Assembly: GCF_052425735.1 (NCBI RefSeq)
Contig: NC_135761.1
Location: forward strand, 17,484,001-17,548,000
From: Oculina patagonica
Taxonomy: Eukaryota
Direction: 5' to 3'
Length of the DNA stretch: 64,000 bases
Shown here in pieces: positions 23,236 to 60,762 of this stretch (position 1 is its first letter; each line of letters opens with the position of its first letter). Under the pieces are notes generated by a model. It did no database searches and had not been told where the DNA came from. It was given only the letters and a program-made list of their open reading frames with translations. The translations under genes were made by a program, and so were the position numbers.

Positions 23236-26200
23236 ATGTGTCCTTCGCTGTTGCTGTCTAGCTTCCTTGTATTGGCGGTCTTTACGGTGAGTTACAATAT
23301 ATCTAGATAATGGCACAAAAGACAATGCGTCTTTCGTAAACTGCTGCGGTATATCAACAGTCGCGTATCGCAGGAAAAGACAATCGGCCTCAATCAGTGG
23401 ATCAAAGACCGACATGAGTTTTTAAACAGTCTTTTCCAAGCATCTGCTCAAATTAAATCGAATCGAGGTAAGGAATGGCGTGTAAAAAAGATTATAAGCG
23501 CTTTGTTGTCGAGGATGTAAGAAGGTCTTAACGAACTCAAGCTCGCACAAATTGGACATTATAAGCGGTTCGTGCAGGTTGCTTCTCAGTTTGCGCTGAA
23601 AGAATATCCGCCGTCCACACATTGTTATGAAAAAGGCAAGCGATCAATCGTCAAAACAAGAAAGGGAGTATGTATAAAAGGGAAATTGTCCTAAGACTTC
23701 CCTCTTGAGTTGCCGTGTCAGTGGTGCTTACAGCTATTGTTCCTAAGTTTTATCAACATCGAGTTCACCTTTATAGCATAAATACACCGTCAAGCATACA
23801 GTTGAATATGCCTCAAAAGAAAGAAAACCTGGATCAGTATCATGAGCCTGCGAATATGACAGCCGCCTCTCGTCGCTTCTAGCTGCTAGGGCCGTTCGAA
23901 AGGGTTGCCATTCAAACTCACGAAGGTACACCCCAAGCGACCTAGATCGAAACGATGAGACGCGGTTGTATTCGCAGGCTGTTACAAGGGACAAAATGTT
24001 AAAATAATAGAACTGAGAATCAGTAAGTATTTGATATTGTCTTGTTATAGCACTAACTCACAAAGATAAACGACTGAAATCTATGACAATCGACGAGGAA
24101 GATTCCTGTATTTTTTAGACTAGTTGGTCTCAAAACTCAAAGAAGGTTAACTTTATTATTACTGTAAACTAAGTAGCTCTGTTTTGTATAAGCATTGATA
24201 GAGGGCTTCAGTTGTTTCTTTTACGATCACTTCATTTACATTGGCACGGATGTACAAACTAGTATGCTGTGATTTGTCACGCGAGGTACAGTCATTTCAC
24301 AAAAGAAAAACAAATTCAAATTCTGTACCAGGTGCCGCTGTCACGGGGGTCAGGAGGATTCTCCCAGGAAATCGAAAATTCCGTGCTGTGCACATTTTAC
24401 AATAGAAAAGTTTGCGCTTTTTACCTTTTCAATTCAGCCATTTTTATAACTCCTGACTAAAACGGTGGCTTGAAATCATCATCGGTACATTGAAAAAAAA
24501 AACACTTATTTACTTTCGGCAGATTATCACGAGCGCTTACAGATAAGTTACAACGTGTGAAAGATGAGTCAAGGCTCCTTTCGGGAATCTTTACAGTTCG
24601 GAACATTCGTAAAACACTGCAATGCCAATATGTTGGTTAAAAATGAGGTCAGTACTGAGCTGTAAGAGACAAAACAACAAACAAATCCTTTTTACGCTAT
24701 TGTTGTTTTTAGTTTCACTCAAAGTCTAGCCAACGTTTTTCCCGGCTTTCTTCTTGCTAACATCAGGACTTCGTATGCCCTTGTCTTAAACCTCTTAAAT
24801 GGTACTTAGTTCCGCGGATAAGAGGCGAAAGGCACGCATAGTCAATTTCACACGCAAAAGTTAGTAACTTTGAATCAACATTTTGCAAGAGCAACATTTT
24901 CCTTTTTGTTCGTTTCTCAGTGGTGGTAAAAAAAATGTTCCTTTCATATGTTAGGGCGTGTTCGTGCATGTGTGTGGAATTTGTTCCTCGTTCTTTTTTT
25001 AAAAATACATTAAAGACTGATGTAACTTCTGAAAGCTGATATGGGTACTAATTTCACTTAGTACTTTTAATTGCTTTTTGAAAAACGCAGACTTTATAGT
25101 GGATCTGTTGTCTAGGTAATTTGTTGCTATTGCAATGGTATGGAATATTGATAAAGGGAACACCAAATATGTATTGGAGTAGAGAATGAATTATTTTTTT
25201 TTATATTTTATAAAAAAAAAAAAAAAAAATTTTTTTTTTTTTATTAGTGATCCGACATTTGCGTGTTTGCTATAGCAAGGGCGATGACATCTTTGTGGTG
25301 AAATAAGCCACTTATTTCGGTGTTATAATCCTTGGTGTTATAAGCCATAATATCACCGTCCTGTGTCTATTAAAAACCATGCAGACTGAAAACGTGCGAC
25401 AGCTACAAGTGGCACAGCATTGTCTCCTCCTGGTGGTCTTTTTATTGATTAAGCTTTTCTCTTTTCAAATGAGCATCCGAACAATAGCAAAAAGGTGTAA
25501 ATTGCAGAGGAGTTTATTTTTGTGGCATCAGACAAAAAACTAACTTGCATGTCTGTGCCTTAATTACTTAATTAAGATCCGGTACAAAAGGATTAAGCTT
25601 AACATAAAGCTAAGAAAGTGATCAACAAAATTTCGTAGGAGAATCGAAATAAACTTTTCGACACACAGGTTAAAAGCCAGAGTAACTAAATACTTCTCTT
25701 GTAGCTTAAAGGACTTTCAACACAGAGAAGTTGTTAATATATATCACGCGCAATATTAACAGCTATTATTGGCTTGAGTGTACATGTGATTTTTTTTTAA
25801 ACTGCGATCATGCCCTTTTGAAAAAAACAATCGCCTGCGCTGATCAGAGGTTAATTTTGCTTCTGCTACATATTCCCTTCTACATGCCCCTCAACTCGAT
25901 GTCAACTTGTGTAAACGATCTATTGTTTTTGTCGCCGCTATATGTCGCAGCGACATGTCCCAGATTCGTAACCTCTCGTGTGTCGGCACCTTTAGATTGC
26001 GGTCGTGTTACTTAGCGTGTATGAAAGGGAAAGCGTATTCTCTTGGTGGGGAGGGAACACAAGTAGACCCATGCTCAGAATAATATTCAATTTCCTATTA
26101 GAGTCACAGAAACCATTCTATAGACCTCTTTTCCTTGGCACCACGCAATTTTCAGAAATGCTTCGTAGCATGGGTCGGGAAGCAGCTCTCGCAAGGACTT

Positions 26201-29200
26201 TCATGAACCAGAGAACAACAGAACAAACAACAGGAACAATGCTCATTGCCCCCCCCCCCCCCCAAAAAAAAAAAAAAAAAACAGTAGCAACTGCGACACT
26301 AGAAGACCGGTAGAATTAAAAGCTTAAGAGAGCTTTTAATCTCGCGGGTAGCTGCACCAGTTACATCGCTGTAACAATATTGCGAACAGTGTTGCACCGT
26401 ATACCCCGCGTCTTCAGCGTCCAAATTTCACATGTTGATATCTGTCTTGCCTCATTTTCTTGCCAGGTCAGTGTAGTGTGTGGTCCAGGCGGTCACGTGT
26501 CTCTTCTTTTTCGGTCCTTCTCAAACCCAAGTAGCCTGCTGCTCAGCGGCTACTGCTGTGACCCAGCATGCGCAGACTGTAACTATTACTTTGTGTTTTG
26601 CATCCGTGATAAACCGAGCTCCGCCAGCTGCTTGGTATCGGGTAAAACCAAGACATATCACAACTACAAGCACTTGGTGTTTTCGTCTGGCGATTCTCTT
26701 GGAAATGGCTGGAAAAATCCCTTGGAAGGAAGCTTTAGTTCTTGGAAGGTAAGGACTTTTTGCATCTTGTCTCTTCATAAGTGGTAGCAACTTGGTAGAT
26801 AAATTTGGTTGTTTAAAAATTACATTGTCATTAACTATTTAATGGTTAACAATGAGAGAACAACCCAATTTTTGTTGTTAAAATGTCAACTACGTATATC
26901 TGAGAGCGGGCAAGCGAGACAATAATTTACGTTTTTAAAAACTAAGCTTTAAGTTGAGAATTAATCGCCCCGGCCTAGCCTTATCATGCGCTGGTACCTA
27001 CATTGCCTGCCTCAAGGCCCTTCAACAAGGCTGTTGTATCAATCGCATTTCACAGTTATTTCCACAAGAACATAATTGTCTGGTAGATAATGTGGGCTCG
27101 AATAGTAATCATGAAGACAAACCAGCAAAATCAAAGGTCATCTTCGGGTTCTCAACTGAAAGCATGCAAGGGATTATCGCTAATTTGGAAAATCTTATAA
27201 ATTGTATGCGCTTAGTACTGCGAACTTTCCCATGAAGCAGTGCAACTTCCGGCATACACATGCATTTTTTAGAATGGTAGCAGGAACGTGTTACACGGCC
27301 AATCCCATACTTTCGAGGATTCACACCTACTCAAGCTGCTTGTCTTGTAATCCTAGTAACAATCTTCTGATAGTCACGAGCTATGACCTTTCGACTGACA
27401 CAAATGACTTCATATTATGTGCACAGGGTGTGCTTAGCTTTTCCATCGACATCTATGACTATGACTACTTTTCCGAAGCTGACGTCGTTGATCGCCTCAA
27501 TGTCAACAAACTTAACGTGACGCCGACCCCTTGGATGGAGTCAGTCAAATGGAAAACAATATCCCTCGGCGGGAGTGGTCATCCTTCCACCATGACGGTG
27601 AAATATAACATACAATGCAATGCAAATTATTATGGACCAAACTGCACGAAGTACTGTATCGCACATGATGACGATGTAGCTGGGCATTACACCTGTGATA
27701 AAGCCACTGGTCACAAGGTGTGTCGAGCTGGATGGCACGGTGCCAGTTGCAAGGTGTACTGTGTGCCTCATGATGATGACACACATGGGCATTACTCATG
27801 TGAGCCTGCCACTGGGAGAAAGATTTGTCTACAAGGTTGGTATGGATCTTCCTGTAAAGTGCACTGTGTCCCTAGGAATGACTCGCTGGCGGGTTATACT
27901 TGTGATTCCCAGGGGCAAAAAGTTTGCTTGCGGAATTGGTACGGTAAAGACAAGTGTGACGTTTATTGTAAACAGACCAACGATTCGAACGCTGCTTACA
28001 GTTGTGACTCGATTGGTAACAAAGTTTGTTTACAACGATGGTATGGTCCATTTTGTGATTGCACGCCCAGGAACGATTCTTCCATGGGTTACAAGTGTAA
28101 TATTACCACCGGTAAAAGAGAGTGTTTTAATGGATGGTTTGGTGGTGACTGTAATGTTCATTGTTTACCAAGGAATGATTCAGCAGGTCATTATACTTGC
28201 CACAGTGGTACTGGAGCTAAGGAATGTCTGCCGAACTGGTTTGGGGGAAACTGTACCGTGTACTGCAGGGCAAGGAATGATTCACTGGGTGGACAAGAGT
28301 GCACAATTAACGGCAGCCGACTTTGTGCCAGTAACTGGTATGGTCCAAGTTGCAGCGTGTACTGTTCCCCCAGAAACGACAAAGGCGGTCAGTACACTTG
28401 CAATCTAAAGACAGGACAAAAAATTTGTGAACAAGATTGGTACGGGGACAACTGTACCAAGTACTGTGTTCCCAAAGATAGTGATTTTTTTGGTCATTAC
28501 AATTGCAACAAGATCGATGGCAGAAAACAGTGCCATAGTGACTGGTATGGAAGCCACTGTACGTTCTTCTGTACCCCTCACAATGACACGCATGGACATT
28601 ACACGTGTGACGGAACAAATGGCACTAAGGTGTGTTTGGAAGATTGGTTTGGGACTGAGTGCAAAACGTATTGTAAAGCAATGAACAACTCTCAAGGGCA
28701 TTATTACTGTCGTCTCGAGGATGGAGCCAAGATATGCCACAAACATTGGTATGGTACTAACTGTTTAGTACACTGTATGGCTACAAATGACTCTAGGGGT
28801 CATTATGAGTGTGATCCTAGCGATGGTAGCAAGATATGCCATGCGGACTTTTACGGTCCGAACTGTTCGACACGCTGTATTCCAAAGCGAGGCAATGCAG
28901 ATGGACATTATGACTGCAACATCAAGGATGGCAGTAAGGCTTGCCTTCCGAACTGGTACGGACAAAATTGTAGCGTGTATTGTACAGCTAGGAATGACTC
29001 GACAGGACATTACGAGTGCAATGCAGTGGACGGGAGTTGGAGCTGTCTGGATGATTGGTACGGTCCTCACTGCTCCGTACAATGCTCGCCACAGAACACA
29101 TCCGCGGGTCATTACACATGTGACCTTAGAAACGGGAGCAGAATATGTCTTCCAGGCTGGACTGGGCAGTTCTGCGACAAGGGTGAGTTTTAAATTTGAA

Positions 29201-29837
29201 TTCTTTGTACTATTTTTTCTAAGTACTCATGTTGGTTCTACGACTCTGTAATGAACTTACCAAGAAAGTAATAAGTGGTAAAAGTAGCAAACAGGGGTAC
29301 ACAATGTAAGCCTCTACAGTAGTAGGATATCGTAGTTTTCTTATTTTACTTACCAATGCACTATTGTTTCTGTCTTGTTCCTTTTTGTAAATAATGTGTC
29401 CCAACTCCATTTGCCTTCTTTTAAAATCTGGTCTTCAGAAGTATACTTTTTTGTTTATTTTTCTGGGGCTTAAGTATGGTTTAGCGTAAATCCTTCTACT
29501 CCTAAGGTCAAGCTTAGTCATGATTAGAATGCCGTGGATAAGGCCAAGCAATAGAGCAATACTTTCAAGTGGCACTGGATGTTTCAGGATTTTTTTTTTC
29601 AGCAATGTTGAATTTTGGCAATCTTTGAATCAAATAAAGCGTTAAGGATGCTGGAGGAAAATCCATTTCGAAAATTTAAATATTTTTTCTAAGAGAAGAA
29701 AGAAAGGAGGAACAATACATCGCTTCTTTTTTTCCTTGCTGAAAACTTTCTTCCTCACTATGATTTTTCCAGAAACTGAGCCAGTGACAAAAGAGCCTAC
29801 AACCATCATTCGAACAACAACAACGACAAAAACACCC

Positions 29838-29869
<32 letters not shown>

Positions 29870-32800
29870 CAACAACAGCAACAACAACAACAAACCGAAC
29901 ATCCAACATCCGAAAAGTCCTCCTTGCCATGGAGCCACCCAGTTACTGAGCCAGTGACAAAGGAGCGTACTACCAACATTCGAACAACAACAACAAAAAC
30001 CAATTCCAGCATCCGAAGAGTCCACCTTGCCATGGACCCATCCAACCTTGCCTTCGCAGTATAAAAACGAAGAGAGGATTGTGATAAAGTTCTGGCACCA
30101 GTGGAATGGAGAAAAGGTGAGTTTGAAACAAGCACATTCATGGAGTTTTAAAAAGGCGTTTCTTTTAGTTCATTCCAAAGGTATAGAAAAGGGATGCATT
30201 ATTCCTACTGTAGGAATAGTGAAAGGAGTACTATTTTCTGTAGAAGGTACATGCACGAAAGGGTTACTTTTTCTGCCAAAAATGGTGGCGTCGAAAAACT
30301 AACCTCACATTTGTATTCATAGATAGATGTTTTGCAATTCAAGGGACATTTGTGGCCTCACGCATGAAGTTTTAGTTAAATTAAATGAATCTCCAGTGTT
30401 GTGTTTACATATTTGTTTCTCTTTCTTACAGTTTCTGAATGAGGCTCTCGACAATCTGAAATCTCTTTTCGCGAGTAAACTAAACAAGTTTTGTGAATCG
30501 GAAGCAAACTCTAAGTGTGGACTGCCAGATAGTTGGTTTCCTCCTAATAGGTTGGTGTAATCACTGTAAAATTCTCGAATTTTACTTCTATGCACTTCTT
30601 CTTTTTATAGTCACGGCTGAAAGGAGCATAAAAAGCGTTTAGGCCGTGTCCCAGTACAATTGTCAAAATAAATGCCTACAGGTATTCAAACAGCTTTAAC
30701 AAATGAACAACACAGTGCAGTGCAGCGCAGCGCGGTGAAGGGTTTTTCCATTAGGGTCTGATGTGTTGACTACATCTCAAATGGCCCGAAGTATCACTGG
30801 ATCGTATGGCAAATGAGCTCCTTACTGACAACTGACAGAGGGCCAGAATGTTAAAATGTCAACTGCCGAAGGGCTTGAAATTAGAACTGGCATTTAAACT
30901 GTCAGTCTCTCCTCTAAGTGCAACGTACAAACCAGAACGTTCCGACCTGGTGTCGTACAGGGCAGTGTTAATAACTGTGCTTCTAATTTCAAAATTCAAA
31001 TGCTCATCACTTACCTCAGTGGCATATATATCTTGTTTTTATGATATATTAAGGGACTGATCAAACACTTTTCTTCCTGTTTTTTTTTTAGATCACTCTT
31101 TGATTCTGAGAGTATTTTAGTGGAAGCGACTCAGCTAACAAACGAAACTCTAACAGTTGAAGTCGCCGTGAAACTTCCTCCAAGTGTCAAAGGTGAAGCA
31201 ATCACTGAAACATTTATCTGCGACATATTAGGTTTTAACTGCCTCCTTCTTGCTAACCCATAAAGTGATTACAGTGGAACCCCGATATAACGATATGTCA
31301 AGGGAGCAGTAAAAATATATCGTTATATCGAGGTATCGTTATATCGAAACTCCCGATATAACGATATGGCCGTAAAATAACCGAAAATATCGTTATATCG
31401 GGGTTAACTTAATCAAAGATACTGAAACTTAGAGAACTATTGAATGACAAGGAGGATAAAGAGGATAAAGTTGATAAAAAAGGCTTAGAACACAGTATCA
31501 TTTTCGTATATAATTGTACAAAGCGGTTGGCAGAAACATTAGAGATTACACGATTACTGTAAGGTTATTGTGTTCAATTCAATGTTTTGCTTAAATTGGT
31601 ACTGAGTACTGATAATATCGTTATATCGGGAAAGATTTTACGTTCGGTGCACTAAATTCTCATCGTTATATCGGGAATATCGTTATATCGAAGATCGTTA
31701 TATCGGGTTTCTGTCCCATACTCTTTACTGTAACTTTTGACGGGACAAAGAATATTCATCGTTATATCGGGAATATCGTTATATCGAGGATCGTTATATC
31801 GGGGTTCCACTGTAATTACGCGTCACATACATGCCATTTCAGGATCAGTTCCAGGCCGCACGCTGGAAGAGGCGGTAATGATCAACAAAGCCGTCATTAA
31901 AAATGTCACATCAGCGGAAATCAAAGAGGTCTACGTTGTTTCCCCGAGCTTGCCACCAGGCCTCTCTGGGTCAGCGGTGTCCACGAGGTCGTCAACGGTT
32001 TTGTCTTCCTCGCTATTTTACGTCATCGTCGCTGCGGGTTTCACTATTCTTCTTCTTGTTGTGATCATTGCGTCGTGGAGTTTCTTCAAGTACAGGTAAT
32101 TATGACTCTTATCTGGTGCAGTTTTGTTGCACATTGAGTCTAAATATTGTTCGGGCATGATAAGCTTGGTTATCAAGCAAAGCATGGGCTTGAAGTATCA
32201 ACAAGGTGTACCGCTGAGTGGGGCCTTGGTTCTTCCGCACAGATGGGAGAGTTCTTTGATGACTGTCAAAAATCGTTTAGCCCACAAAAAGCGAATTAAA
32301 CCAATCGAAACTCAAAGCAGACTAACCTACTATTCTTGCATGCAGTATAGATTTTTTTTTTTGGGGGGGGGGGTGGGGGAGGGGGGCTAAGTCACGCAAG
32401 CCGTAGTGAGTCAGACTGCATGAGGTATGCACCGTTGAAAATTGCCATCATTATCGTCGCGCCTCTCCGAGGTTTACCCATTCCCCCTGTGACTTGCGTC
32501 ATTCACCGGTACATTTTTCCGCAAAATTATTGGAACTGATTGTACGGATTTCGTGAGCTCATTTTAAAACGAGACGCCAAAACACACCCAAAACTGCCAT
32601 TGCAGATCTCCTCTGTTGTCTTAGTTGTTTACATGAAGTTTTTTATCGTTTCTCTATTCAGAAGAAGGTCTCGTGTTCGTGTCATCAAGGTAACGCCTGC
32701 ATGCAGAAAATGGTCATCGGGTGACAATATTGCTTTGGTATCAAGGGTTTCTAATGAAGACACAGAGGTAAGTCGTTATCAAGTATAAGTATTTTCAGCT

Positions 32801-33371
32801 GTTGAGGCTTTGATCAAAAACGTACCGTCAGTTACAATAGTGTCAGACATTGTAAACGGCTTCCGCATCTTTCAAAACATGCATGCCAAGCCGATATACT
32901 TGCTCTTTCTACTATTTTGACACTTCTATTTTTTCCATAAAAGGTTGAATTCTGGGGGAAAAATTGGCTTGCTGTATAGTACGCGGTCCGCGAGTTAATG
33001 AATGATTGGTGGGGGAGGAGGGGGGGGGGGGGGGGCGTTGCCAAAAACTTACAACAGTCGCTTTGAATACAACAAGAAGACTGGATCTGGTTCCACAAAC
33101 GACCTTTAGTGGTCGAATCGAAAAAAATATAAAAAGCATGATAGGTCACTTGCTATAAGAAAGAGCTGTTCACAGACTACGAATCAAAGTGCTGACTTGG
33201 CAAGATTAGCCAACATTGACATTATTCATCACATGAGTGTAATTTCTTTTCGGTATAGTACTGGCAGACAACCCATTCTTGGTTTCTTTGTTTTATCCTT
33301 AGGGTATCAAGATTTCTCGCGGCATCTCTCACTCCACGGTTCTTCCGTGTGGTGTAGTTTTACAGCCTTAA
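23236..33371 (+). CDS. Poly-DSL Delta-like type-I membrane protein E: signal peptide, MNNL/C2, 15 DSL repeats, Thr-rich stalk, SEA-like domain, TM, short tail; in-frame stop in the stalk exon as assembled
   Basis: Exons 23236-23286 (MCPSLLLSSFLVLAVFT), 26467-26748, 27427-29182, 29773-30116, 30432-30550, 31092-31192, 31843-32095 (TM LFYVIVAAGFTILLLVVIIASWSFF), 32662-32767 and 33303-33371. Splice phases are mutually consistent. Repeats match C-x3-(W/Y)(Y/F)G-x2-C-x3-C-xP(R)xD-x2-GHYxC-x3-G-x3. TGA at 29955-29957. Confidence 0.8.
29812..29893 (+). repeat. (ACA/ACC/AAC)n coding microsatellite in the stalk exon of gene E
   Basis: Direct reading of the sequence; lies in the first of two ~170-nt/~100-nt tandem units beginning actgagccagtgacaaa. 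Confidence 0.9.
31272..31812. mobile_element. Tc1/mariner-pogo type MITE
   Basis: TIR CAGTGGAACCCCGATATAACGA, TA TSD, many ATCGTTATATCG subterminal repeats. Confidence 0.88.
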
Positions 33372-33781
33372 TTCTGATGAAGGTAACAAGTCACAGGTGA
33401 CTAATAAAGAGGGGCTCTAACTCAACTGGGCCTGATCCGACGAGTGTACTTATGAGTTCTTGTGTAACGAGACAAAACAAATTTGCAACACTTTGCTCTT
33501 AAAAAGAGAAAATTTATTGCTATATCTTCATTACGTAATTCTTACTGAGGTACGTCTTAGCAAATGTAATTATTAAAACGACTCAAATAATCGCAAAGCG
33601 AAAATGGAGCTTTTTGGTGTAGCTATTACAAGTCCATAATTTGATTGCTATTGCTGGTCTCCTTTGACTACTGTTTAACGATACACAATCGTTCCTACTA
33701 ATAGGGGGGGGATTGTCGATCAGATTTCCCTATTGATAATACGTCAAAGCATCAGTAAAACTAAGGAATGACTGACACTTC

Positions 33782-36700
33782 TTACTCAATCGTAAACAGC
33801 TCCTCCTGGCTTCGAAAACGACAGTTTTGCCCTTCCCAGCCTTTCAAGCACACTTTACTTCCGTCACGTTCGTCGCACGTGTAATGCCCGTTCACGGTGT
33901 CGTTATGCGGCACGCAATACGCGGCACAGTCGGGCCCATACCACGACGGATGACACTCTTTTACTCCTTCGTCGATACAGTCGTAGTTCACTTGCTTCTC
34001 AACGATTAAGCACGTCAGGGAGCAGTTACCGTCGAATCGACGGACACCGTCAAGACAGAGCTTGTTTCCTTCGTTGTCACAGGTGTAATTCCCCAGATGG
34101 TGGTCAGTTTGAGGAACACAGAACACCGTGCAGTTCTCGCCGAACCATCCATCAAGGCACTTCTTACTTCCGTCATGCGCACAGCTGAAATGTCCGCTGT
34201 CGTCATCGCGAGGAATGCATTGCGTGATACACTCGGCACCAAACCACGTCGGGAGGCACACTTTTAAACCATCGGACGGTCTGCATCTGTTGTGAACGAA
34301 TAAGAATGTAATACATTTATTCTTAGCGCCAATCACACCTTTCCTAGAAGTGCGGTTGCTTATAAACCCTTCTATAGCTGTATTTGAATTTGAATGACCC
34401 TAGTTCGCAACTGGTACTAAGTAGGTTGATATAAGTGATTTGACGGATTTAGTAAGAAAAGGGAGAGAAGATATTAGTTTGAAAGTGACCCTGGCAAAGA
34501 GTAAAGTTTCAGTGGTACCGGGTATAAGAACTACTGGCTCTATTTCTGGCCTTGTGGCTTCCTCGTACATGGGGCTTCACAATTTTCTCGTTAACTGATA
34601 ATATTTGAATGTTCACATAATCCATTTCGATACTGCATCCCTTCCCCAATGGAGAGAGAGAATATTTTGTTGTTTAAAAGTTCAATGTAACAGCGATTTC
34701 CAGGTTCCATTTTCTATTCGCGGTTTTTTCCAAATTTTTAATTTATCTAGACATGTGAATCAATCATTTCTCGGGATTTTCCTCGTTGAGTTGCATCGAA
34801 CTATATGATATTTATAAGCACTGCAGAAACAAGACCAACATACTTTTAAGAAACCACCATGTTGCCCGGCACTGATGACCCAAGTTACATAAAGAATACC
34901 ACGAAAAGTCTCAAAAAGAGGTTTCTCCTGCTATTCTTTGGGCAACTTGGGATAATCCTGCTGTATTAGAAGTATTTTCCTTATTTGTGTGAAAACCCTC
35001 TACTTCCTGAAGCAAATACCGTAATGATTCAATTCAGCGCCCGGGGCGTTTATTTACTTTTGGCACCTCAAGGGAGGGCGCTTATTCGAGACAGGGCGCT
35101 TATTTAATTTTTTGAGAAACAGCCAAATGTTCAAAACACAAAGTAAATAAATATTAAAACAACTAACAATAACAGAAACTGTAATAGTAACAGTACCAAA
35201 TTGTTGAAAATTTTAGTTACTTATTCGAAAGAGGGCGCTTATTGGAAGGAGGGCGCTAAATCAAATCATTACGGTAGTCAAAAATCGACTAAAAATTATC
35301 AATTAATTACAGATGGGGGTTCGTGAAGACTTACTTGTAATGTCCTTTCTCGTCACTATCCTGAGGCACACAGTATGAAGAACAGCGCGAGCCAAACCAA
35401 TTTTTCACGCATCTGTTACATGACGGACCTTCCCAACGAGACCGGCATATCTTATTTCCCTCCTTGTCGCACGTGTAGTGTCCGCGCCAGTCATCCCGCG
35501 GGACACACGACCGAGTGCAGCTGTTACCATACCAATGCCGCCTGCAAACCTTTCTTCCCTGACTATCACACGTGTAGTGTCCGCTCGAGTCATCCCGCGG
35601 GACGCACTTCACACTGCACCTAGGCCCATAGTAGTTCGCGTCGCAATACAACTCCAAGTCAAGCGTCACTGTAACGCCTCGCTCCCTTAGCGTCAGACTT
35701 TTTCGTAACGGGTTGCGGGATGTCCCTGGGGTGACGGAAGGGAGCGTTATAGACGGACTCCCTACGAAGTCATCGTTCGTAAATTTGTCCTTGTCCCAAA
35801 CTTGCACTATTATCGCAAGGGCGCCCTGTAATGATAAATACAGCTACATGTAACATCAAAATTTTACTGTGGACCTCTCGTTTAACCAAACACATTGCAC
35901 GACTTAGTTGATATGGACCCGGTGCAGGCGGAGAAAAGAAATAATAGACAGCATACTAGAGCAGTTTTCAATTGAGTGTCGTAAAACCAAAACCAAACTC
36001 CAAACTCCGGCCAATCACAAAGGACACAGACAATCCAGTGAACCAATCAAAGCTCGAAGCAAATACATTAGCTGGCACGAAGCGCGGGAAAACGTGCGAG
36101 CGAGTCACGATTGGTTTTGGTTTTACTCCTGATTGGCTGAGAAAGTGGCGCGAGATTTTTAAGCCAATTACTAAGCGTAGTTATGCAAAACCAATGCAAA
36201 CGCAATTTACTTTTGACACTCAAGTAAAAACCGCTCTATCCACCCAAATGACTTAATATAACTGCATTCTTGCTGTATTTTGGCTAGCTCACTGGACAAG
36301 TCAAAATACGATGAGAAGTAGAAAGGTGAAGCGATATTTCAGTTTTTTTTTCAATTTGCAAACAGGTATAATTGAACGCTTTCTTTCCCGAAAACCAGAC
36401 TTTAAACAGTGTGTTGCGCTGCGCATGGTCAGGAGAACTAACACAGATATCAAACCATGTTTGTTTGCGCTTTAATTTTACTTTACTGACTGCAACGGGT
36501 TAATAAAGCACCTACTTGAAAAGTATTAAAGGAGAACGACTTCCTAATGTTAAACGAATGGTCATCCCGGTCTCCAACCACGCCTGTCTCGCTTTGTCCA
36601 ATGTTGCAGCTAGATGAAGATGATCCAAAGGCTGCCTGACTCACGCACAGTTTAAAATAAGCATCGCACGGGTAGCACCGGCCAAAGTTAAACATCAAGT

Positions 36701-51159: not shown

Positions 51160-51540
51160 AGAGACTATGTCACGGATTTTAACAGCCCAAATGTATATTT
51201 GTGTCGTAGGAAACCTAAAAATAATGGTCCATTTTTATGAACAATTGCTATTTTAGAACGCCAAAACTATTTAAAAGCGCGTTTGGCTGCGGATGGCTCG
51301 GCCGGATGGTAATGGATTGGTTACAATTTGAAAAAGTTAGTCAACATTTTCAAGTTGTTTCTGCGCGCCTTCAAAAAAATCGATATTTATAGCCGAAGTT
51401 TGATTTCTATCCCCAAATAAAGGTTATATCTTCTGTTAAATGTTCAAAGACGGACAATGTTTTTATGGGTAAAAATGCCTACCACTTATTTCAGAACAGT
51501 CTAGAACAAAAAACTGCGTAATCCCCGTGACACAGACCCT
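51160..51540. mobile_element. Kolobok-like MITE, TTAA TSD
   Basis: TTAA|agagactatgtcacgg ... ccgtgacacagaccct|TTAA. Confidence 0.7.
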
Positions 51541-51859
51541 TTAACTTAAAAGATAACCATTACAGATCAACCCAAAGAGGGTCAGTTCTCAGCCTAGATC
51601 TTACCGTTTAAAACGGCCTAAAATCTGGTTCTGTTGACCAGGTTGATTAGGAATTCTTCGCTTTGTAATTTGTCACTATTCATATCCTATAAAAGCTAAA
51701 ACTAGAGACCTCTACTACGCATGTGTTGAGCATTTATTATAGCTAGCACAAACGCTAAAACTCAGTTATGTCATAACATAACACTTAGGGAAAATAGCTA
51801 TGCGACCGCTCCTGTAGACACACCTCTTAACGAACTAACACGCGGACGCACGTGTTCGT

Positions 51860-54800
51860 TCATAAATCAAACACCACGTTCCAGTCACTGTCCAGGGTCA
51901 GTTGCCTGTTACCAGCTCCGCCACTCTTGCCTTTTTCTCGTGCTGCGGCAAACAAAGGGTTATTGTACATTACCAAATGATCATCTACTTGTCTTGAGCC
52001 ATCTTCAGTCCTGTACAAGAAAATGCACTCATTATTAATTGTGTTTAAAAAAGACACGAAGAAACACCCCCTTTGTTAACAAGCATTTTCGACGATATTA
52101 ACGGAGAAGAACGTGATTGGGAGTCAAGATGGTCAGAGCTCTCGCTGATTTTACCATCTTATGATGTTCTTTTCGTGGAGGGTAGCCATTATTAAGAGAT
52201 TAATCATTAAGCCTTTTCCATTCAAAAATGATCAAAACCGCGTTACAAGCCTAAAAAATGAAAAAAGTAAAAAAAAAAAACTCCCTCAAAACTAAATAAA
52301 ATCTGTATAAAAATATATCATCACATAGTTACATGTAAAAACAAGTATAAAAACATGCGTTTTAGCATCAATAACAAAACAAGTTTATTTTTTTGACCCG
52401 TCTCGTGTATTTTGCTGAACTGAGATTTCTTTTTTGGTATCCAAACACGGATCAATGTGATTTTGTAAAGCTTCTCTAAACAAATGTGTGGCAAATTAAG
52501 CAAACAAAGGGTTAAAGTCTTGCTTATGTGGAAAACAATAGTACACTTGCAATAACATTTGCTTACTTTTTAAAGTTTGCTATGTCTTTGTTCAAAGAAA
52601 ATTTGAAGGGATCCCGTTTCATCTCCCAGAACTGACTGGTTTCAACACTTCATCCTAAGGTTATTGTTGTTGTTGTTATGTCGTTATAAAGCGTAAACGC
52701 ACTCGCTCCATCCTCATTATAACCAACCCTTTCTCCCTTCCACTTTAGAAAAGCCTGATACTCAGGCGACGCCGTGAGGGGGTGGAAAACTGAAATAAAA
52801 GCGTCTGTGTCAGGCTTTTCTTTCCTTTCGCGCTTCTACCCTTTCTCTCCCCCCCCCCCCCCCTTAGAAAAGCCTGATACTCAGGCTATCCTCATTATGC
52901 CATTAGACGCATAAGACAATCGGAACGATCGGAACTTATAAATTTATCTGTGATTGTTTTTGCAGTACTTACCAAGAGACTTGCTGAACTTTGTAGAACA
53001 TGTCATTCATTTCGTATTGTGAGAGGATGTCAGCTGCTGGGTTAACTTTGCCGCCAACTGAATTCATCCTCTCCAATGAACACTTCTCTTTGTCATTGTG
53101 TTGTCTGGAGTAAGGAACTTTTTTCGTTCGGGGTCTACAACTGAGCGAAAGATTCAGATATTAAACAGTAGGTCTACAAATACTCTGTTAATGTTACGAG
53201 CGGCCCTTAATTCAGGGGGGACTAACGTATAAAAGTGACTTGGGTGATCGTCGAAAATCCCCTTTCTCGTTTCGTGGTACCGAATCTTTCTTGCAAATGG
53301 CCTGTATCGTTCCTTTTTTTTCAGTTTAACATCCTTAACTAGGTATTTTAATAACTTAAGCAGCGGAACCAAACCACCAATTTCTCAGTTCGGACACCCG
53401 TCGCTATTGTAAGAGAGTCCCCCTGGAATCCACCCCCCGTGAAAGTTTGAGTGCACACAAACTTTAGGGGCGAGTCACCCAAACTAACGTTTACTCTTTT
53501 ATGCATCACGCTAAATTAACACGCGCGCATCACGCTACGTACGCGTGACTGTGTAAACACGCGCACGCCTTTTCTATCTCTAACAGCTTACCTTATCAAA
53601 GCAATCATCGCTATAGCACTGAGGCACAACAGAAGCGCAAAGCCGCCAGTGATTAAACCGATACGCGTGTTTGTCATCCATCCTTCTTTTTCCGACTTTC
53701 TGCTTTCCTTTTCCACAGAAACGTTCCCTTCACTTGGTAACAAAGTAGAGATGCTGTATTCTGTGGTTTTCAGTTCGGTTGCAGGGACTGACGATGCTAC
53801 CGTAGTGGAGGCGACATATTCTGTGGTTTTAAATTCGGTTGAAGGGACTGACGATGGTGGAGTCGTTATTTCAGGTGGGCGAGTTGTAGTAATTCCTAAA
53901 CAATGAAAGAATACATGATACAAGAAATGTAAATGATAAGAACTGACGTTTCGGTGCATCTTGCGCCATTATCAAGCTTTTTTATCACTTATTATGTAAC
54001 TCTGATAATGGCGCAAGATGCAGCGAAAAGTCGGTTCTTATCATTTATATTTCTTGCATCATGTATTTCCAAATTATTTCTTATTAGACTAATGAAAGGA
54101 TATCTTAGTTTTTCGTTCAAGTTCTCCTTAATCCCCATTCTACACCATCCTTGTCCTTCTTCGGTTTATTGATAAATCTAAAGCATCGAATCTGTTTAGC
54201 GTGAAGACGCCAGCATTCCATGTGGAAATAGCCATTTCATTCATTTTTAAACAGCATTTTTAAAACACATGTTTGCCAGGGCTCAGCTTAGACATTCTAA
54301 AAGTCGTGCGCTTCTCGTTTCCGGTTTGGTGAGCTTGACTTAGCTTCGACTTGTAAGCAAATCTAAGGGCCCCTGTGCATGTTTGCTCGCGTTGGATTTG
54401 ACTCAAGGCTTCAACAAATCAAATATTTTAATAGAGAAAGTATCAAAAAAATTTGTGCGCCTTAGTGGTGTCAGTCTCTTGCAAAGCTTAATCGATGCCG
54501 TCATGGGAATGATTAAGTTGGGTCGTCCCACGAACTCAAGCGTTCTTCTGGATTCTTTCCCAGTACATGTCTACGGATCACCTTACAATTAGAACTGGGA
54601 ATCGAATAAACTGATATGAGGCCAATCAAATGCGATCTACTGAGTAGTACTTTGGTATATTCTATTTGTTTCTACAAAATGGATTGTGGGTCATAACAAC
54701 AAAATTAACTTACTCTGAAGGCACGCGTCTCCATGCCAGCCTTCAAGGCACAATCTATGGCCCGTTTCTTCATCACAAGTGTAATGTCCTTGACTGCTGT

Positions 54801-57800
54801 TTTGTGGTCTGCAAAATACCGTGCAGTTAGGTCCGTACCAATGCCTGTAACATAACCTGCTTCCATCTACGGAATTACAACTGTAGTGTCCGGTGGAATC
54901 ATCCCTAGGGATGCAGTACACGGAGCAGTTAGGGCCATACCAAGTTGGGTGACAAATCTTTGCGCCGTCCTCAAACCCACAATCGTAATGTCCTTTAGAG
55001 TCATTGTTGGGCACACAATGCGTTGAACAGTTGGAGCCGAACCAACTCTGGTGACATATCTTGCTACCATCACTAGAATCGCATTCATAATGTCCCCGAG
55101 AGTCATTTCTTGGTGCACAGTGAACCGTGCAGTTTGGCCCAAACCAGTCTTGATGACATATCTTGGTCCCGTCTTCGACAGCACAGTGGTAGTGCCCTTG
55201 TGAGTTGTTCGTTGCTTTGCAATACGTTTTGCACTCGGATCCAAACCAATTCTCCAAACAAACCTTGCTGCCGTTAACGTTATTACACTTGTAATGCCCG
55301 TGCGAGTCATTGTGTGGTTTACAGAAGACAGAGCACAGGATTCCATACCAGTTACTGTGACACTGTTTACTTCCATCGATCTTGTTGCAATTGTAATGAC
55401 CATAATAATTGCTGTCCTGAGGAACACAGTACGCTGTGCAGTTCTGCCCATAATAGTCTGGATTGCAAATCCTTTTTCCTGTCTGCGGATGGCAAGTGTA
55501 ATGACCAGCGTGGTCATCTCTTGGCGCGCAATAAACGGTGCAATTCGGTCCATACCAGTTGCGGGCGCACAATTTACTTCCATTTATCGTGCACTCGTGT
55601 TGACCAAGAGAATTATTCTTGGCCTTGCAGTACACGGTACAGTTTTCTCCAAACCAGTTGGGCAGACACTCCTTAGCTCCAGTGCCACTGTGGCAAGTGA
55701 AATGACCTGCGGAATCGTTCCTTGGTGAACAGGAAACATCGCAGCGATCACTGAACCATCCACTGAGACACTCTCTTTTACCGGTGGTAATATTACACTT
55801 GTAACCCATGGACGAATCATTCCTGGGCGTGCAATCGCAGGATGGACCGTACCAACCTTGCAAACATATTTTGTTTCCATCTGAGTCACAACTGTAACCA
55901 GCATTCGAATAATTGGTCGGTTTACAATAAACGTCGCACTTGTTTTTACCGTACCAACTCCGCAAACAAACTTTTTGCCCCTGGGAATCACAAGTGTAAC
56001 CCGCCAGCGAGTCATTCCTAGGGATACAATGCACTTTACAGGTAGATCCAAACCAACCTTGTAGACAAATCTTTCTCCCAGTGCCAGGCTCGCATGCGTA
56101 ATGCCCATGTGTGTCATCATCATGAGGCACACAGTACACCTTACAACTGGCACCGTGCCATCCAGTTCGACACACCTTGTGACCAGTGGCTTTTTCGCAC
56201 GTGTAATGACCAGCGTTGTCGTCATCGCGTGCTACACAGTACGTGGTGCAGCTGGGTCCATAATAATCACGATTACACTGAACCGAGTACTTCAATCTAG
56301 TAGTAGAGGGACTACTTCCTAGAGTAAGTTGCCACCATTTTGTTTGTGACGCCCATGATGCGGGGACGACGGAAACTTTCTGTTGATACTTGTCTATGAG
56401 GTCATCGGCAGACGGCCATGAGTCTTCGTCATAAGCTTTGATGCTCACTACGAACGCGCCCTAGGAAATGAGATGGCGATTATAAAATATAATTTTAAGA
56501 ATGATTGACATCTTAATTTCCCTAATATGAACACAATACAAGGTCAAGCGAGCCAATGGCTGCATTTCTATGTGCTCTAAATACAAATGGTTTAAAATGA
56601 AAGATTCTTAAAACAATAAACAAATCCATACTTAAAATCTATGACACCAAGTAATACCCGATAATTGTACCAGCTAGCTTCACAAAAGCAACGCAAAAAT
56701 AGTTTTAAAAATGGTTACATGCATCCAATTATCAAGAAAGACATTTTAGCTTTTTACACAACCGGCTTTCGTAGCGGTTTTCGTTTAACTGTGAGGAATA
56801 GTTGTGGGTTTACTTTGTACGTTGAAAAAACCTGCTTTGTCCCGGATGAAAGAAATATTTTTTTCATCAATCAATCAAGAACAAAATCAAATACAGTCGT
56901 GACTTGGCCCAAGTCACGAGGTTTGTTCGCACTTGGCTCCGGTACATGTAAATTCGAGTTCTGATTGGTTCATTGCGTTGTTTTCGTTTGCTTTGATTGG
57001 CTAGATAGATTACTTTACGTCATTACTCGGCTTACCGTCCATGAAGAGAAGGACCATACCAGAGGGTTTCTTCCACCACTATGAAAGTCTTCATTCTTTT
57101 TGAACACAATGTACTTGGTGTTATCGTAGGTCTTTGTCGTGGCAGATGCTACACAGGACCCCCCAGTAGTTTGTTTCAAACATATTTCCAAATAATAGTC
57201 ACAGCTCCTACACGGTGATTCGCAACAATTCCCGTTTAAGTCATTATTAGAAGGATTCGAGAAGCTCGTCAGAAGAACAGACAATTTTCCTCCAGGGCCG
57301 GCTACTGTGACTGGAACCTGAAGAAAGTAATAGTAGACAGGAAATTGATAAAAATGGTTTTCTTCTGGTTTACCGGCGCTGTCTTTATAGCATTAATTTG
57401 AAATGCTATACTGAATACTTTTAAGTCAGTCTGTCACCTATGATTCAATCAGTGAGTCAGTCAGATGTGGTATACGTCAAGGGCAACCGCTCACGCTATT
57501 TATTCCTTTACATGCAAACTGCTACTGAAAATTAAATGAAACCTCCTGAAAATGAAATGGCTTCCTTTTAATTTTTCTACTTTTGGTATCGACGACAACC
57601 GTTCTGATCAGAACCAAGGAGTTAAATGTAAATAGAAGTTCCCTGCAAATACATCCTGACAATCGTTAACTAGAATCTGTACATCTTTGGGCACTTGGTA
57701 ACACTTTGACCCGTCTACATCGCCCATGCGCAAGAAACTATGGACTGGTAATGTTTTTTGTCTTTGTAACTGAACGCCGTTAAAACAACAACATAGTTTA

Positions 57801-60762
57801 ATAGGATCGTGCCAGTTAGCATGTTTCATGATTAGCGAGAAGAAATTGAGTTTGAACAGGTGTTTTCTGGCATGTGTTTTTTTTTTCTTGGTATCAGTAA
57901 TTGGTGAAGACGTGCAGAAGTTAACAAAACATACACCTCCTAAAAAGACATTATGGCTATTTTCTCCTACGATACGTGCGAGACGGCATTCTATAGGGGG
58001 GCGTGTACCTCTTGTTAAAGTGTATCAAATGTGTGCGTAAGATCAGTCAAGTTAGAAGGCTACAGTTAAAATGATAAAAAAATGGTACTCTGAGCGCAAA
58101 ATCAGAAATAGGAGATGCAGGTCATCCATTTTTTACTACTTAGTTTCAACGTTGTTAGCTAAAACCGCGTTCAAGTTACCGTTGATCAAAATTATTATTT
58201 CGTCGTGATTTTTTAATACATTTATACGGACGTTTTCACAAGTCTCTGTTAGTTGTCTGACCCTCACGTTAGTAGATGAAACTCTAGGGCGTGATACTTT
58301 GAATGAAATGTATTGATCGTAGCAGTACAGTAGCAGTTTTTTATACTGTACAAGATGGTTCTTTAAAGGTCTTCTAACTTTGAGTCTGTAGATCGATGAA
58401 ACCATATGATAGTCACGTGTAACCATTCAAAGCTATTGAGCAATACTAAATTAAATTTGATTTTTTTAGACAAGGCACTCTTCAGGAGCCAACGGGTTAA
58501 AGTGATAGAAATAACTGATGTATGGTTATTTTTTTTTTTATTTTGATCCTTCTTGTGCCTGTCACTAAGCAAAACAAAGTCACACTCGAACCAGTTTGAG
58601 ATAATCTTCCGTTACTTCCCGATTAAAATTAATCTCTCAGAGGGGTTTATAAATGCTTCTACGGAAGTCTTTCTAAAAATAAACAAAAGTCGAAATTTTG
58701 TAGTTTTATCAACTGGTTACTAGTTTTTAATTTCCCGTTCTAGTATATAAAACAACAAAGAGGACCTTTATTGGTCTGGAGCTGTTAACGGCCCTTCAGT
58801 ACTTAGGCCACGTATCCCATAACACTTTTAGCGATTCACCTGTGATTATCAGTTTCTACGTTCACATGAGTTGTAAGCCTGAATTCATTTCGACAAAAAA
58901 TAAATGTTGATCTGTTTGACGAAAGTATCAAAGCAAGCGTGATGTTTCATAGTCACGAAACGTATCATACAGTGCGTGTGTAGTGTTTCGTGGATGTTGA
59001 AGCCAACGATTTAGTTATGGCGCCTCGCTGGCATGAACGTTCATAGCCGTGACAAATCGGTTAATCCTCCCTCTCAATCAATCTACACTCTTAGATTGAA
59101 AACACACGTGAACGGATCGTGACGAAACGCATTTTATCAACTACTGCATGAAACAAAATAAACAGAAGATTCATTGGTGTTTTGACTAAACTTCAATTTC
59201 CATTAAACATAAACAAACGGGTTTCTCGCTGCCGGCTTTAAGAAAAACGCTTGCCATAAAGACTGCATTAACTCAAGCTGAAAAAAAAATCACAAAAAAA
59301 TCACTAAGGCCTGGTTCTTTGTATTGTCTTTAAAAAAATAAATAAAATAAGATTTTCCTTGGATTTGAGCCGATTTGTGCCGTTTGTAAGCCTAAACCTG
59401 TCTGTGTTTAGAGTGTGTCATTTGGCCTCGCGCAACAGAATGACCTTTTTCATATCTTGAGTTTTGAGTGGCATATTTCTTTTGCACTTCTAAAAAAATT
59501 CAGTTCCAAGAAACCTCACTAGATCTGCACTTTTACTGAGTTTTCTGTAGCGTTATTAGGTTCCTTCTTTTCACCAAAATTAACAGGGACATAAACCTGA
59601 CTTGTTCCGCTTGCATCAGTGGACCGCGGAATAGCCAAGGCAAACAAATGCATGCTGTCTCATAATTGCACACGCCCCTTTCTTGAAGCAGCATAACCCA
59701 CCCGTTTCACCCAACTGTTTCACTCAAGACTGCCAAATAAACCGTTGAGAGAAACGAACCACAATTAGACGAGAAAATAAATGCCTTAGCTTGGTGGAAC
59801 ATCTCTTCACGGAGCACATGGTCACTGATGAACAAGAGTCCGGCCCTGGGCGATTCTACAGATAGTCGTACAATTATGATTAATTGAAAATCGATGCGTT
59901 GCCCGTGGGAAACATTTTTGTGGTGATTTTCTAAGTGATCAGACCGGAAACCAAACCATAAAACAAGATATCCGTCTTTACCGGCAGATTGGGTAAAGTT
60001 AATTATAGCGCCACTGTAAATCCCGTGTCCAAAACATCCTTATGTGGCACCGCTACTGTGTTTTGACACATCAGGCATCTTGCAACTTGCTTTTCACTTG
60101 CGGCAACTCGAACCGACGACTCGTTAAACAAAGAAAAGATAATGAAAAGGCCTTTTTATGACAAAATATGCCCTGATCACAAAACAGGAAAGTCACCGAA
60201 TACCCGCTTTAATTGTTAAAATGACGCTACCACACACACAGACTGAAATGTATCTGCACTAAGATTTTTGGATGTTTAGTGTTTTCAATAACAAAGGCGC
60301 TGGTTTGTTAATAACCATTTTTGGGCTTAACGAAACGATGTTTCTAAGGTTTTGCGACTTTTTGCGCTTGGAAAAGCCGAAAGATTCGTTTTTTTAAGGC
60401 AGAATAAATATAAACATACGCAGCGTACCGTACGTAAGTATAATTTTCTCATGGAATACTTCCTCTTCGAGATTTCTTATTTGAGTCATGTTTCAAGCTA
60501 GAAATATTTAATTTTTGCTATAGCTTTATAATTTTAAAGTAAGGATTTAAGACAGAGAGATAAAAAAAAACTTTTGTCCCGCGAGATCGAGAGTTACGCG
60601 TCAGGTAAACTTCGAATGATGCGCGCAAAATTTCCCCTTTCTTTGGACCCCCATATAATACAATAGTATTTCTCGCAAACCTACCTGAACAGTAACGAGC
60701 AAAGATAGAAGCAGAAGAAAACTAGCGGCATTTCGGGAAACGGAGAGTTTCATCCTAACCAT
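51860..60762 (-). CDS. Poly-DSL Delta-like type-I membrane protein H (signal peptide, MNNL/C2, 15 DSL repeats, Ser/Thr stalk, TM, ~105-aa tail), ~907 aa
   Basis: Exons 60762-60685 (MVRMKLSVSRNAASFLLLLSLLVTVQ), 57317-57036, 56460-54714, 53895-53592 (TM IGLITGGFALLLCLSAIAMIALI), 53134-52973 and 52010-51860; 2724 nt in frame. Confidence 0.87.
53910..54068. repeat. Long inverted repeat (~65-bp arms) of Penelope-pLTR-like sequence next to the acceptor of the gene H TM exon
   Basis: aatacatgatacaagaaatgtaaatgataagaactgacgtttcggtgcatcttgcgccattatca pairs with tgataatggcgcaagatgcagcgaaaagtcggttcttatcatttatatttcttgcatcatgtatt. Confidence 0.85.

Follow-up and report, generated by a model that had tools for sequence, protein, structure and literature searches.

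A cluster of four poly-DSL, Notch-ligand-like genes encoding membrane and secreted proteins in the coral Oculina patagonica

Four genes, here called E, F, G and H, lie between positions 23236 and 60762 of a 64,000-nucleotide stretch of the Oculina patagonica genome (assembly GCF_052425735.1, contig NC_135761.1, positions 17,484,001 to 17,548,000 of the forward strand; the whole stretch is referred to as the window, and positions are counted from its first letter). We show that all four are intact, transcribed and selectively constrained, and that they belong to the branch of the Delta/Serrate/LAG-2 (DSL) ligand superfamily that appears as RDSL, for 'Repeated Delta Serrate Ligand', in Yoshioka et al. 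2021 (PMC7850063). The proteins are built from Notch-ligand parts, as an earlier reading of the window made from the letters alone (the sequence-only reading) had recognised: each combines an MNNL/C2 head with DSL units, and none has EGF repeats; two are membrane proteins and two are secreted. What is new here is the complete architecture of the family, its split into membrane and secreted clades with conserved tandem linkage, a dichotomy between the clades in the glycosylation sequons of the DSL loops, and a conserved motif in the cytoplasmic tail.

Four intact genes with a C2 head and arrays of DSL units

The gene models, which draw on annotated proteins, transcript-derived orthologues and splice signals, place E on the forward strand (23236-33371, 947 residues) and F (38903-33782, 442 residues), G (45246-40156, 478 residues) and H (60762-51860, 909 residues) on the reverse strand. 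All introns are GT-AG and each model has a single, terminal stop; the interval outlined by the sequence-only reading begins and ends exactly at the ATG codons of E (23236) and H (60762). The four genes share one exon plan, in which a signal-peptide exon is followed by an MNNL exon and then by an exon that holds the second half of the C2 domain together with DSL units, and the layout proposed earlier is therefore borne out by the models and by Pfam. There are 15 DSL units in E, 15 in H, 7 in F and 8 in G, the last two counted by core motif. Pfam DSL (PF01414) matches 15 stretches in the open reading frame (ORF) at 27202-29193 (+; E=8e-117) and 15 in the ORF at 54691-56448 (-; E=1.4e-121), as well as 3+4 stretches in the two array exons of F and 3+4 in those of G, the F protein scoring 2.6e-67. 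A single hydrophobic transmembrane segment is found near the C-terminus of E and H, which are of the type-I membrane form, and none is found in F or G. The earlier description of E and H thus stands as to the 15 repeats, the transmembrane helix and the tail, and the mucin stalk that it gave to both is present in H; the stalk of E differs, consisting of a T/N/Q-rich piece and a module of about 130 residues. F and G do stop after 7-8 repeats without a transmembrane segment, and the stop and 3' untranslated region (UTR) of F lie within RNA contigs. Their arrays follow the C2 half as had been proposed, but they are spread over two exons, running on into exon 4.

The proposed lack of EGF repeats also holds. 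PF00008, EGF_CA and hEGF give no Pfam match in E, F, G, H or their cnidarian relatives, and a six-frame scan of the 64 kb finds neither a six-cysteine EGF pattern nor a further DSL hairpin outside the modelled exons; in E, moreover, RNA joints reach the stalk and transmembrane exons. The arrays of E and H also exceed the cut-off of the Pfam EGF_TEN profile (80 versus 65 bits); the match overlaps the DSL units and reflects their EGF-like character and not separate EGF repeats. Evidence for transcription comes from contigs of four RNA-type runs (X1 to X4) placed on 29100-35000; the intron-skipping joints that these contigs contain argue that the runs are indeed RNA. Selective constraint is seen in ratios of nonsynonymous to synonymous substitution (dN/dS) within 0.17-0.24, the arrays giving 0.17 (E/H) and 0.19 (F/G) at a dS of about 1; the C2 domain is diverging faster than the DSL array.

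The arrays of E and H each contain 62 cysteines (2 + 15x4) over about 520 residues, in units of 32-36 residues that recur with a period of about 34 residues and four cysteines. Adjacent units share one hairpin, so that the closing C-x2-G-W-x-G-x2-C of one unit is the opening C-x3-Y-Y-G-x2-C of the next; the overlap follows from the fact that the 46-residue, six-cysteine Pfam DSL domain can be fitted 15 times only if neighbours overlap. Units of E and H are positional orthologues, with 55-91% identity on the diagonal and 28-61% off it, and between H and the Nematostella protein some positional match is discernible in units 1-7, most clearly in units 1, 2, 5, 6 and 7. This correspondence indicates that the array is old and has not been homogenised.

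We take Jagged-1 residues F199, R201, R203 and D205 to be positions of the face that meets Notch. In the DSL unit adjacent to C2 (DSL1), the position of F199 is occupied by Y in E and H and by K in F and G, and that of R201 by I in E and by V in F, G and H; A (in E and H) or S (in F and G) stands in the place of F207. Only the equivalents of R203 and D205 survive in DSL1 of all four proteins. In Jagged-1, the single substitution F207A cuts Notch-1 binding to background (PMC3888931). In the membrane forms, furthermore, the Notch-facing loop reads R-N-D-S in most units. Counted by script, a loop sequon is present in 10 of the 15 units of E and in 10 of 15 in H, and in 5/12 and 5/10 units of the transmembrane forms of Nematostella and of an octocoral, as against 2/7 units in the secreted F, 0/8 in the secreted G (1/8 by eye) and 0/10 and 0/11 in two secreted Nematostella proteins.

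When the N-terminal domains are scanned alone, Pfam MNNL gives 47 bits for F, 42 for H, 31 for G and 21.7 for E, the last falling just below the cut-off of 22.5 bits. Residues 33-252 of F align to the C2-DSL-EGF1 structures of Serrate, Jagged-1 and DLL1 (HMMER, 4e-21 to 7e-19). The AlphaFold model (predicted local distance difference test, pLDDT, 73) matches DLL1, Jagged-1 and Serrate at 1e-20 to 1e-14, with a Foldseek value of 3.6e-20 to DLL1, and the next structural matches are Ca2+-dependent lipid-binding C2 domains, for example those of cPLA2 and perforin. In the alignment with Serrate, Jagged-1 and DLL1, D62 and D122 of F fall on D72 and D140 of Jagged-1; both positions are kept in G and H, and the loop W-D-x-D-x4-D-D is invariant in all six secreted-clade proteins compared (6/6). 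D72 and D140 of Jagged-1 coordinate Ca2+, and the Jagged-1 C2 domain binds liposomes of phosphatidylcholine, phosphatidylserine and phosphatidylethanolamine (PC/PS/PE; PMC3888931).

At the other end of the membrane forms, the last part of the H tail contains …VMYNNPLF…, a sequence that is conserved in P0003, the Nematostella orthologue of H and E, and in the coral transcript P0016. Among the matches, all complete H-type tails have an NPx[YF] motif, namely those of H, the coral transcript, Nematostella, Dendronephthya (ENPLY), Exaiptasia (NPFF and NPFY) and EukProt P0023 (two NPLY), and most bilaterian Deltas among the matches lack it. A homology search with the H tail alone returned nothing at E<=0.01, conservation being confined to the short motif (tblastn, regular expression). 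The sequence [FY]xNPx[YF] is a signal for LDL-receptor-type endocytosis and for PTB adaptors, and occurs also in CED-1, Draper and Jedi-1, where the adaptor is GULP. Mucin-like stalks of 30-340 residues, with 38-50% S/T/P, are carried by H and by most of its transmembrane relatives.

Membrane and secreted clades in conserved tandem order

In a tree built on the C2-DSL1-2 region, E and H group with the Nematostella transmembrane protein XP_032232843 (annotated 'protein draper') and an Actinostola protein, with support of 96/94, and F and G group with the secreted Nematostella protein XP_032232844 ('delta-like protein D') and coral transcripts, with support of 95/95. Within the latter, G pairs with a Pocillopora-type protein; the membrane and secreted clades are deeply diverged. 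The genes for XP_032232843 and XP_032232844 share a strand and are separated by 12.6 kb, in which histone genes are the only others. E and H are thus co-orthologues of one Nematostella membrane gene, and F and G of the adjoining secreted gene. On the Nematostella sequence OW051997.1, histone quartets are repeated both in the region of the long intron of the transmembrane gene and between the two genes (L001:26427-31528, L001:40624-43730 and L002:2908-6014).

The linkage recurs in corals. The order in Pocillopora verrucosa is H, G, F-like, F-like; in Desmophyllum an F/G-type MNNL exon follows the H orthologue on the same strand; and in Acropora digitifera the 3' end of a G-type gene is followed by an F-type gene and an M20 peptidase gene (L009:19939-23490). 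Since an M20 gene stands beside the F-type gene in Acropora digitifera and the window carries a tandem M20 array beyond E, the neighbourhood is conserved, and the order found in Pocillopora and Acropora indicates that H->G->F(->M20) is older than the split between Complexa and Robusta. E has the appearance of an additional copy of H in inverted orientation. An octocoral relative was also found, and a protein of the scyphozoan Rhopilema has MNNL, two DSL units, a mucin stalk and a transmembrane segment, so that the family extends beyond Anthozoa. The cluster had been presented as lineage-specific, and this description has to be given up: both clades have Nematostella orthologues, which adjoin each other, the order H->G->F is found in Pocillopora and Acropora, octocoral and scyphozoan relatives exist, and the family had already been noted (PMC2770060) and named RDSL (PMC7850063).

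Exon structures and surrounding sequence

The long forward ORF of E is 99% identical to GenBank KAL9975606 (P0001). Exon 1 (23236..23286, +) provides the ATG and signal peptide in 17 codons with a hydrophobic N-terminus and ends at the donor GTGAGT; the first exon of the GenBank model, 24564-24653, encodes no signal peptide and was provisionally set aside in its favour. Exon 2 (26467..26748, +) encodes the N-terminal MNNL/C2 half and was located by tblastn to P0001 and to Nematostella P0003, and exon 3 (27427..29182, +) encodes the C-terminal C2 half and the 15 DSL units, with 62 cysteines and 19 N-x-S/T sequons; it is present in the RNA-type runs at a share of 0.28, and its donor, 29182/29183, is visible there as a joint. 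The stalk exon (29773..30116, +) has its acceptor at 29773 in the RNA contigs and at an internal site, 30010, in the annotated model. A joint 29182->29773 in run X2, together with continuity from before 29971 into 30003-30116, indicates that the exon begins at 29773 in related individuals. It is rich in T, N and Q and polymorphic for indels, with a 31-nt skip (29971->30003) in X1, X2 and X3 and a 33-nt insertion in X4. Read from 29773, the window haplotype meets a stop after about 61 codons and has no single frame open throughout; with the acceptor at 30010 the frame is preserved. The stretch 29773-30009 is a low-complexity (ACC/AAC/CAA)n coding sequence whose length varies among runs, and in the window haplotype it holds two copies of the motif E/V-T-E-P-V-T-K-E-x-T-T in different frames.

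Downstream, exons 5 and 6 of E (30432-30550 and 31092-31192, +) encode the juxtamembrane module, with RNA joints 30116/30432 and 30550/31092, and exons 7 and 8 (31843-32095 and 32662-32767, +) encode the end of the module, the transmembrane helix and the basic tail, with joints 31192/31843 and ~32096/32663. These four joints establish an mRNA that passes from the DSL exon to stalk, module, transmembrane helix and tail, with nothing EGF-like between. The annotated last exon (33303..33371, +; 22 codons) has no RNA-contig support, depth being 0 at 33237-33433 in 4/4 runs and 32843-33039 being covered; E may instead end six codons past 32767. The cytoplasmic tail is modelled at 60 residues. The module of about 130 residues between array and transmembrane helix has the order beta-alpha-beta-beta-alpha-beta in a single-sequence AlphaFold2 model (pLDDT 61). 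In order and position it resembles a SEA domain, for which there was also a weak atlas lead (0.78 only), and SEA-like topology is an unproven description of it: the module has no Pfam match, Foldseek returned nothing at E<=0.001 (MUC1 and ADGRG2 regions were among the weak matches), and the turn between beta2 and beta3 has no G-S-V-V-V cleavage motif. Intron 6 of E contains a repeat of about 545 bp (31270-31814) that reaches RNA-contig word depths in the thousands in 4/4 runs, and loose ends accumulate at its two borders. A transposable element that is transcribed and present in many copies is the probable explanation.

The model of F equals GenBank KAL9975607 (P0014) and comprises, on the reverse strand, a signal-peptide exon (38847..38903), an exon for the N-terminal MNNL/C2 half (36516..36791; generic C2, 22.3 bits), an exon for the C-terminal C2 half and DSL units 1-3 (35335..35825), and an exon for DSL units 4-7 (33782..34286) that ends in the stop at 33782-33784, with a 3'UTR to about 33480. 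Contigs of X1 and X3, with an exon border at 34290, stay collinear from 33832, within the final coding exon, past the stop and as far as 33480, so that the stop lies in the F mRNA. The F orthologue of another coral is represented by intron-less contigs of 1.7-1.9 kb in four runs, in which an in-frame stop precedes the ATG by ten codons, the reading frame closes after the last DSL unit with …FTIE and a stop, as in F, and the 3' ends are identical. F contigs have a high word depth in the RNA runs, although word depth is no measure of expression.

G has a short signal-peptide exon (45202..45246, -), an exon for the N-terminal MNNL/C2 half (43326..43595, -), an exon for the C-terminal C2 half, units 1-3 and the first half of unit 4 (41002..41591, -; share 0.88 in the RNA-type runs), and an exon that completes unit 4 and adds units 5-8 and the stop (40156..40687, -). 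Both cysteines of one C2 disulfide are gone from exon 2 of G (…KLWV…, …HNGN…), as compared with F and most orthologues (…KLCV…, …SSCN…); this paired loss has occurred in an otherwise constrained and transcribed gene.

The exons of H (-) encode the signal peptide (60685..60762), the N-terminal MNNL/C2 half (57036..57317), the C-terminal C2 half and 15 DSL units with 62 cysteines and 20 sequons (54714..56460), the S/T/P-rich stalk and transmembrane helix (53592..53895), the membrane-proximal tail (52973..53140) and the end of the tail with the conserved YNNPLF and the stop (51860..52010). The stalk measures 88 residues, 41% of them S, T or P, and the helix is followed by a tail of 102 residues. 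Residues 1-909 of the RefSeq protein XP_078363955.1 (P0046, 1929 residues) are our H model. This RefSeq model spans 33782-60762 (-) and joins H, G and F, the links being translated 5'UTR sequence of G (45366-45247) and of F (39083-38904). Because it contains two internal signal peptides and translated 5'UTRs we regard it as chimeric; in addition, its H part ends at the C-terminus that H has in common with coral transcript P0016, no GT donor follows the last codon of H at the junction with G, and F-type mRNAs of other corals have upstream in-frame stops.

Beyond E, at 378-21491 (-), an M20-family peptidase gene is repeated in tandem, in four copies or more. M20_dimer and Peptidase_M20 of Pfam match the ORF at 10065-10619, and near-identical ORFs lie at 378-881, 16205-16705 and 20068-20559. 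Between two of these copies, at 2260-3560 (-), are adjoining ORFs of 236 and 197 residues; the latter begins with an HeH/LEM-like motif (28 bits, just below the cut-off), and neither received any other assignment.

Possible functions and comparison with known systems

The loss of the contact aromatic of DSL1, the absence of EGF1-2 and the putative capping of the DSL loops suggest that none of the four proteins is a canonical activator of Notch. The sequence-only reading had left a choice between a multivalent Notch modulator or decoy and a repurposed recognition system. The first option appears weakened, because DSL1 of all four proteins lacks the equivalents of F199, R201 and F207, the last of which abolishes Jagged-1 binding when changed to alanine; the second seems more consistent with the data, because the C2 calcium ligands are kept, the DSL loops are predicted to be capped by glycans and the tail carries NPx[YF]. 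We therefore prefer, tentatively, to see in these proteins non-canonical recognition molecules, at the cell surface and in soluble form, with a tip that binds calcium and lipid, H being endocytic. E and H would carry, on a stalk and a stiff rod coated with glycans, a C2 tip that recognises lipids or membranes in the presence of Ca2+. H would be internalised through its conserved [FY]xNPx[YF]-type tail, as an endocytic or engulfment-type receptor, and F and G would be soluble versions with the same tip and bare DSL faces, which could bind the same targets or bridge them to cells. The conserved features are, at the tip, the calcium loop of C2, then the N-terminal DSL units and, in tails of the H type, NPx[YF].

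Several points weigh against this view. E has N at the position equivalent to D72 and its basic tail lacks NPx[YF], so that E and H may differ in function. The C2 domain of canonical ligands touches Notch EGF12 in addition to lipid, and NPx[YF] motifs serve sorting and adhesion receptors too, for which reason endocytosis of H can be suggested but not taken as given. In the secreted Nematostella orthologue the DSL1 face is near-canonical (Y-C-R-A-R-D-D-Q-Y-G-H-Y), and unit 9 of E, of H and of the Nematostella transmembrane form retains an aromatic pair before G-H-Y; some members or some units may therefore still bind EGF repeats of the Notch type. The capping of the E and H loops is predicted from sequons, and any argument from it assumes that they are occupied. 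The label of the runs as RNA is a guess ('RNA?'). Lastly, the binding and the localisation ascribed here to the family members are predictions.

Multivalent modulation of Notch is the alternative to which we would give most room, as a rather unlikely one all the same. The secreted proteins would be decoys or antagonists, and the membrane proteins cis-inhibitors or atypical trans-ligands, acting through C2-DSL1 or, for example, through unit 9. The C2-DSL head is clearly homologous to the Notch-binding module, secreted DSL proteins of C. elegans act on LIN-12/Notch, and both the Nematostella DSL1 face and the aromatic pair of unit 9 would suit such a role. It is hard to reconcile, however, with the substitutions in DSL1, with the lack of EGF1-2/DOS modules, with sequons on the Notch-facing loop in 10/15 units of both E and H, and with a tail that has NPx[YF] and in which no ligand-type feature was identified. 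The density of sequons in these arrays (19-20 per ~520 residues), the mucin-like stalks of H and most transmembrane relatives and the word depth of the F contigs would fit purely structural rods, E and H forming an apical coat or glycocalyx and F and G being secreted into mucus or matrix, with no specific ligand. We consider this improbable, since unit-by-unit positional conservation over long times is not expected of it, and the conserved calcium-ligand loop of C2 and the Cnidaria-wide tail motif point instead to specific binding and trafficking.

Slightly more improbable still, in our judgement, is a self-contained receptor-ligand pair in which F and G would be the ligands of H and E, by DSL-DSL or C2-DSL contacts, and linkage would reflect co-regulation. 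Transmembrane and secreted genes do adjoin in Nematostella, G and F follow H in Pocillopora and Acropora, an F/G-type gene follows H in Desmophyllum, and the secreted forms have bare loops where the membrane forms have putatively capped ones; but plain tandem duplication also leaves linkage behind, linkage is all of the putative pairing that is conserved, and the two clades are deeply diverged. Finally, the doubt voiced by Gazave 2009 for Nematostella, that such genes are artefacts of annotation or assembly or decaying pseudogenes, could find nourishment in the chimeric 1929-residue RefSeq model of H, G and F and in the stalk exon of E, which in the window haplotype is not open in one frame from the RNA-supported acceptor. 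Intact ORFs, canonical splice sites, spliced RNA contigs, full-length orthologous mRNAs, dN/dS of about 0.2 and synteny conserved in five other anthozoan genomes speak against it. For F, G and H the explanation is refuted, and for E, the only gene to which it might still apply, it is very improbable indeed.

To our knowledge, the C2-DSL module has been described in no role other than that of the head by which Delta and Jagged bind Notch. In the present proteins this head is joined to another kind of body, and their family is conserved across Anthozoa, and probably across Cnidaria, in adjoining membrane and secreted forms. If the proteins still touch Notch, they would constitute an unrecognised layer of cnidarian Notch regulation; if they do not, the head would have other uses, in lipid or membrane recognition and in uptake, which bears on the origin of Notch ligands. 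A bolder extension of the preferred account, and one that we regard as doubtful, is that the cluster represents an ancient, cnidarian-wide and Notch-independent module for recognition and uptake, for example for engulfing microbes, symbionts or dying cells. Its parts, named with the same reserve, would be the Ca2+/lipid-sensing C2 tip, the glycan-shielded poly-DSL rod, the NPxY tail of the H type and the linked soluble partners F and G. Were this so, the C2-DSL module would be older and more versatile than Notch signalling alone suggests. The Nematostella pair XP_032232843 and XP_032232844 opens the question to direct test in a genetic model. Misleading automatic names ('protein draper', 'MEGF11', 'jagged-1-like') and the chimeric RefSeq model are corrected by the present analysis.

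The Nematostella orthologue of H was listed by Gazave 2009 as an "unusual DSL arrangement" (PMC2770060); their additional file 7 opens with jgi|Nemve1|212534, which is the P0003 array of DSL units. The RDSL proteins of Nematostella are the same family as the cluster described here, with tandem DSL domains, no EGF repeats and orthology to the founding sequences. The models of 2009 were DSL-only fragments, of whose reality as genes the authors were unsure, and it is the full architecture that is defined here. That no functional description was known agrees with our search: none of multi-DSL proteins was found in the literature searched, which yielded only Gazave 2009 and the RDSL mention of Yoshioka 2021, and searches by accession of the Nematostella, Acropora and Pocillopora orthologues found nothing. 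Another set of tandem coral Notch-ligand-like genes, AnNLL of Acropora tenuis, lies outside canonical Delta/Jagged and is induced by native symbionts; AnNLL is reported not to cluster with RDSL, to have no detectable domain but Hint and to be duplicated only within Acropora (PMC7850063, PMC10584924). They are probably different from the present cluster, being set apart by that published description (Hint, no DSL, Acropora-specific duplication), and F-type and G-type genes are already present in both Acropora and Pocillopora.

Canonical Delta/DLL and Serrate/Jagged ligands resemble E, F, G and H in having a signal peptide and a C2 (MNNL) domain directly before DSL, the fold matches including DLL4, and E and H are type-I membrane proteins like them. 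They differ in that the cluster proteins have 7-15 overlapping DSL units in place of EGF repeats and no EGF1-2/DOS; F and G, moreover, have no transmembrane segment, DSL1 departs at the F199, R201 and F207 positions, E and H have loop sequons, and the tail of H has NPx[YF]. With CED-1, Draper, MEGF10 and Jedi-1, H shares the type-I topology, an NPxY-type motif on the cytoplasmic side and an extended series of EGF-like units that are small and rich in disulfides. This likeness to engulfment receptors is a functional analogy, by which an endocytic or engulfment role for H is possible. CED-1/Draper/MEGF10 proteins have an EMI domain and MEGF/laminin-type EGF units, and the proteins described here have MNNL/C2 and units that score as DSL (~25 bits each); Pfam finds no EMI match in E, F, G or H, and no YxxL motif resembling an immunoreceptor tyrosine-based activation motif (ITAM) was seen in H. 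In view of the missing EMI domain, the names 'protein draper' and 'MEGF11', which NCBI gives to the Nematostella orthologues, are misnomers. The secreted DSL proteins of C. elegans, such as DSL-1, have a single DSL domain and one or more EGF repeats, with no transmembrane segment and no C2/MNNL. F and G are likewise secreted, and they differ from the DSL-1 type in carrying a C2 domain and 7-8 DSL units in an EGF-free architecture.

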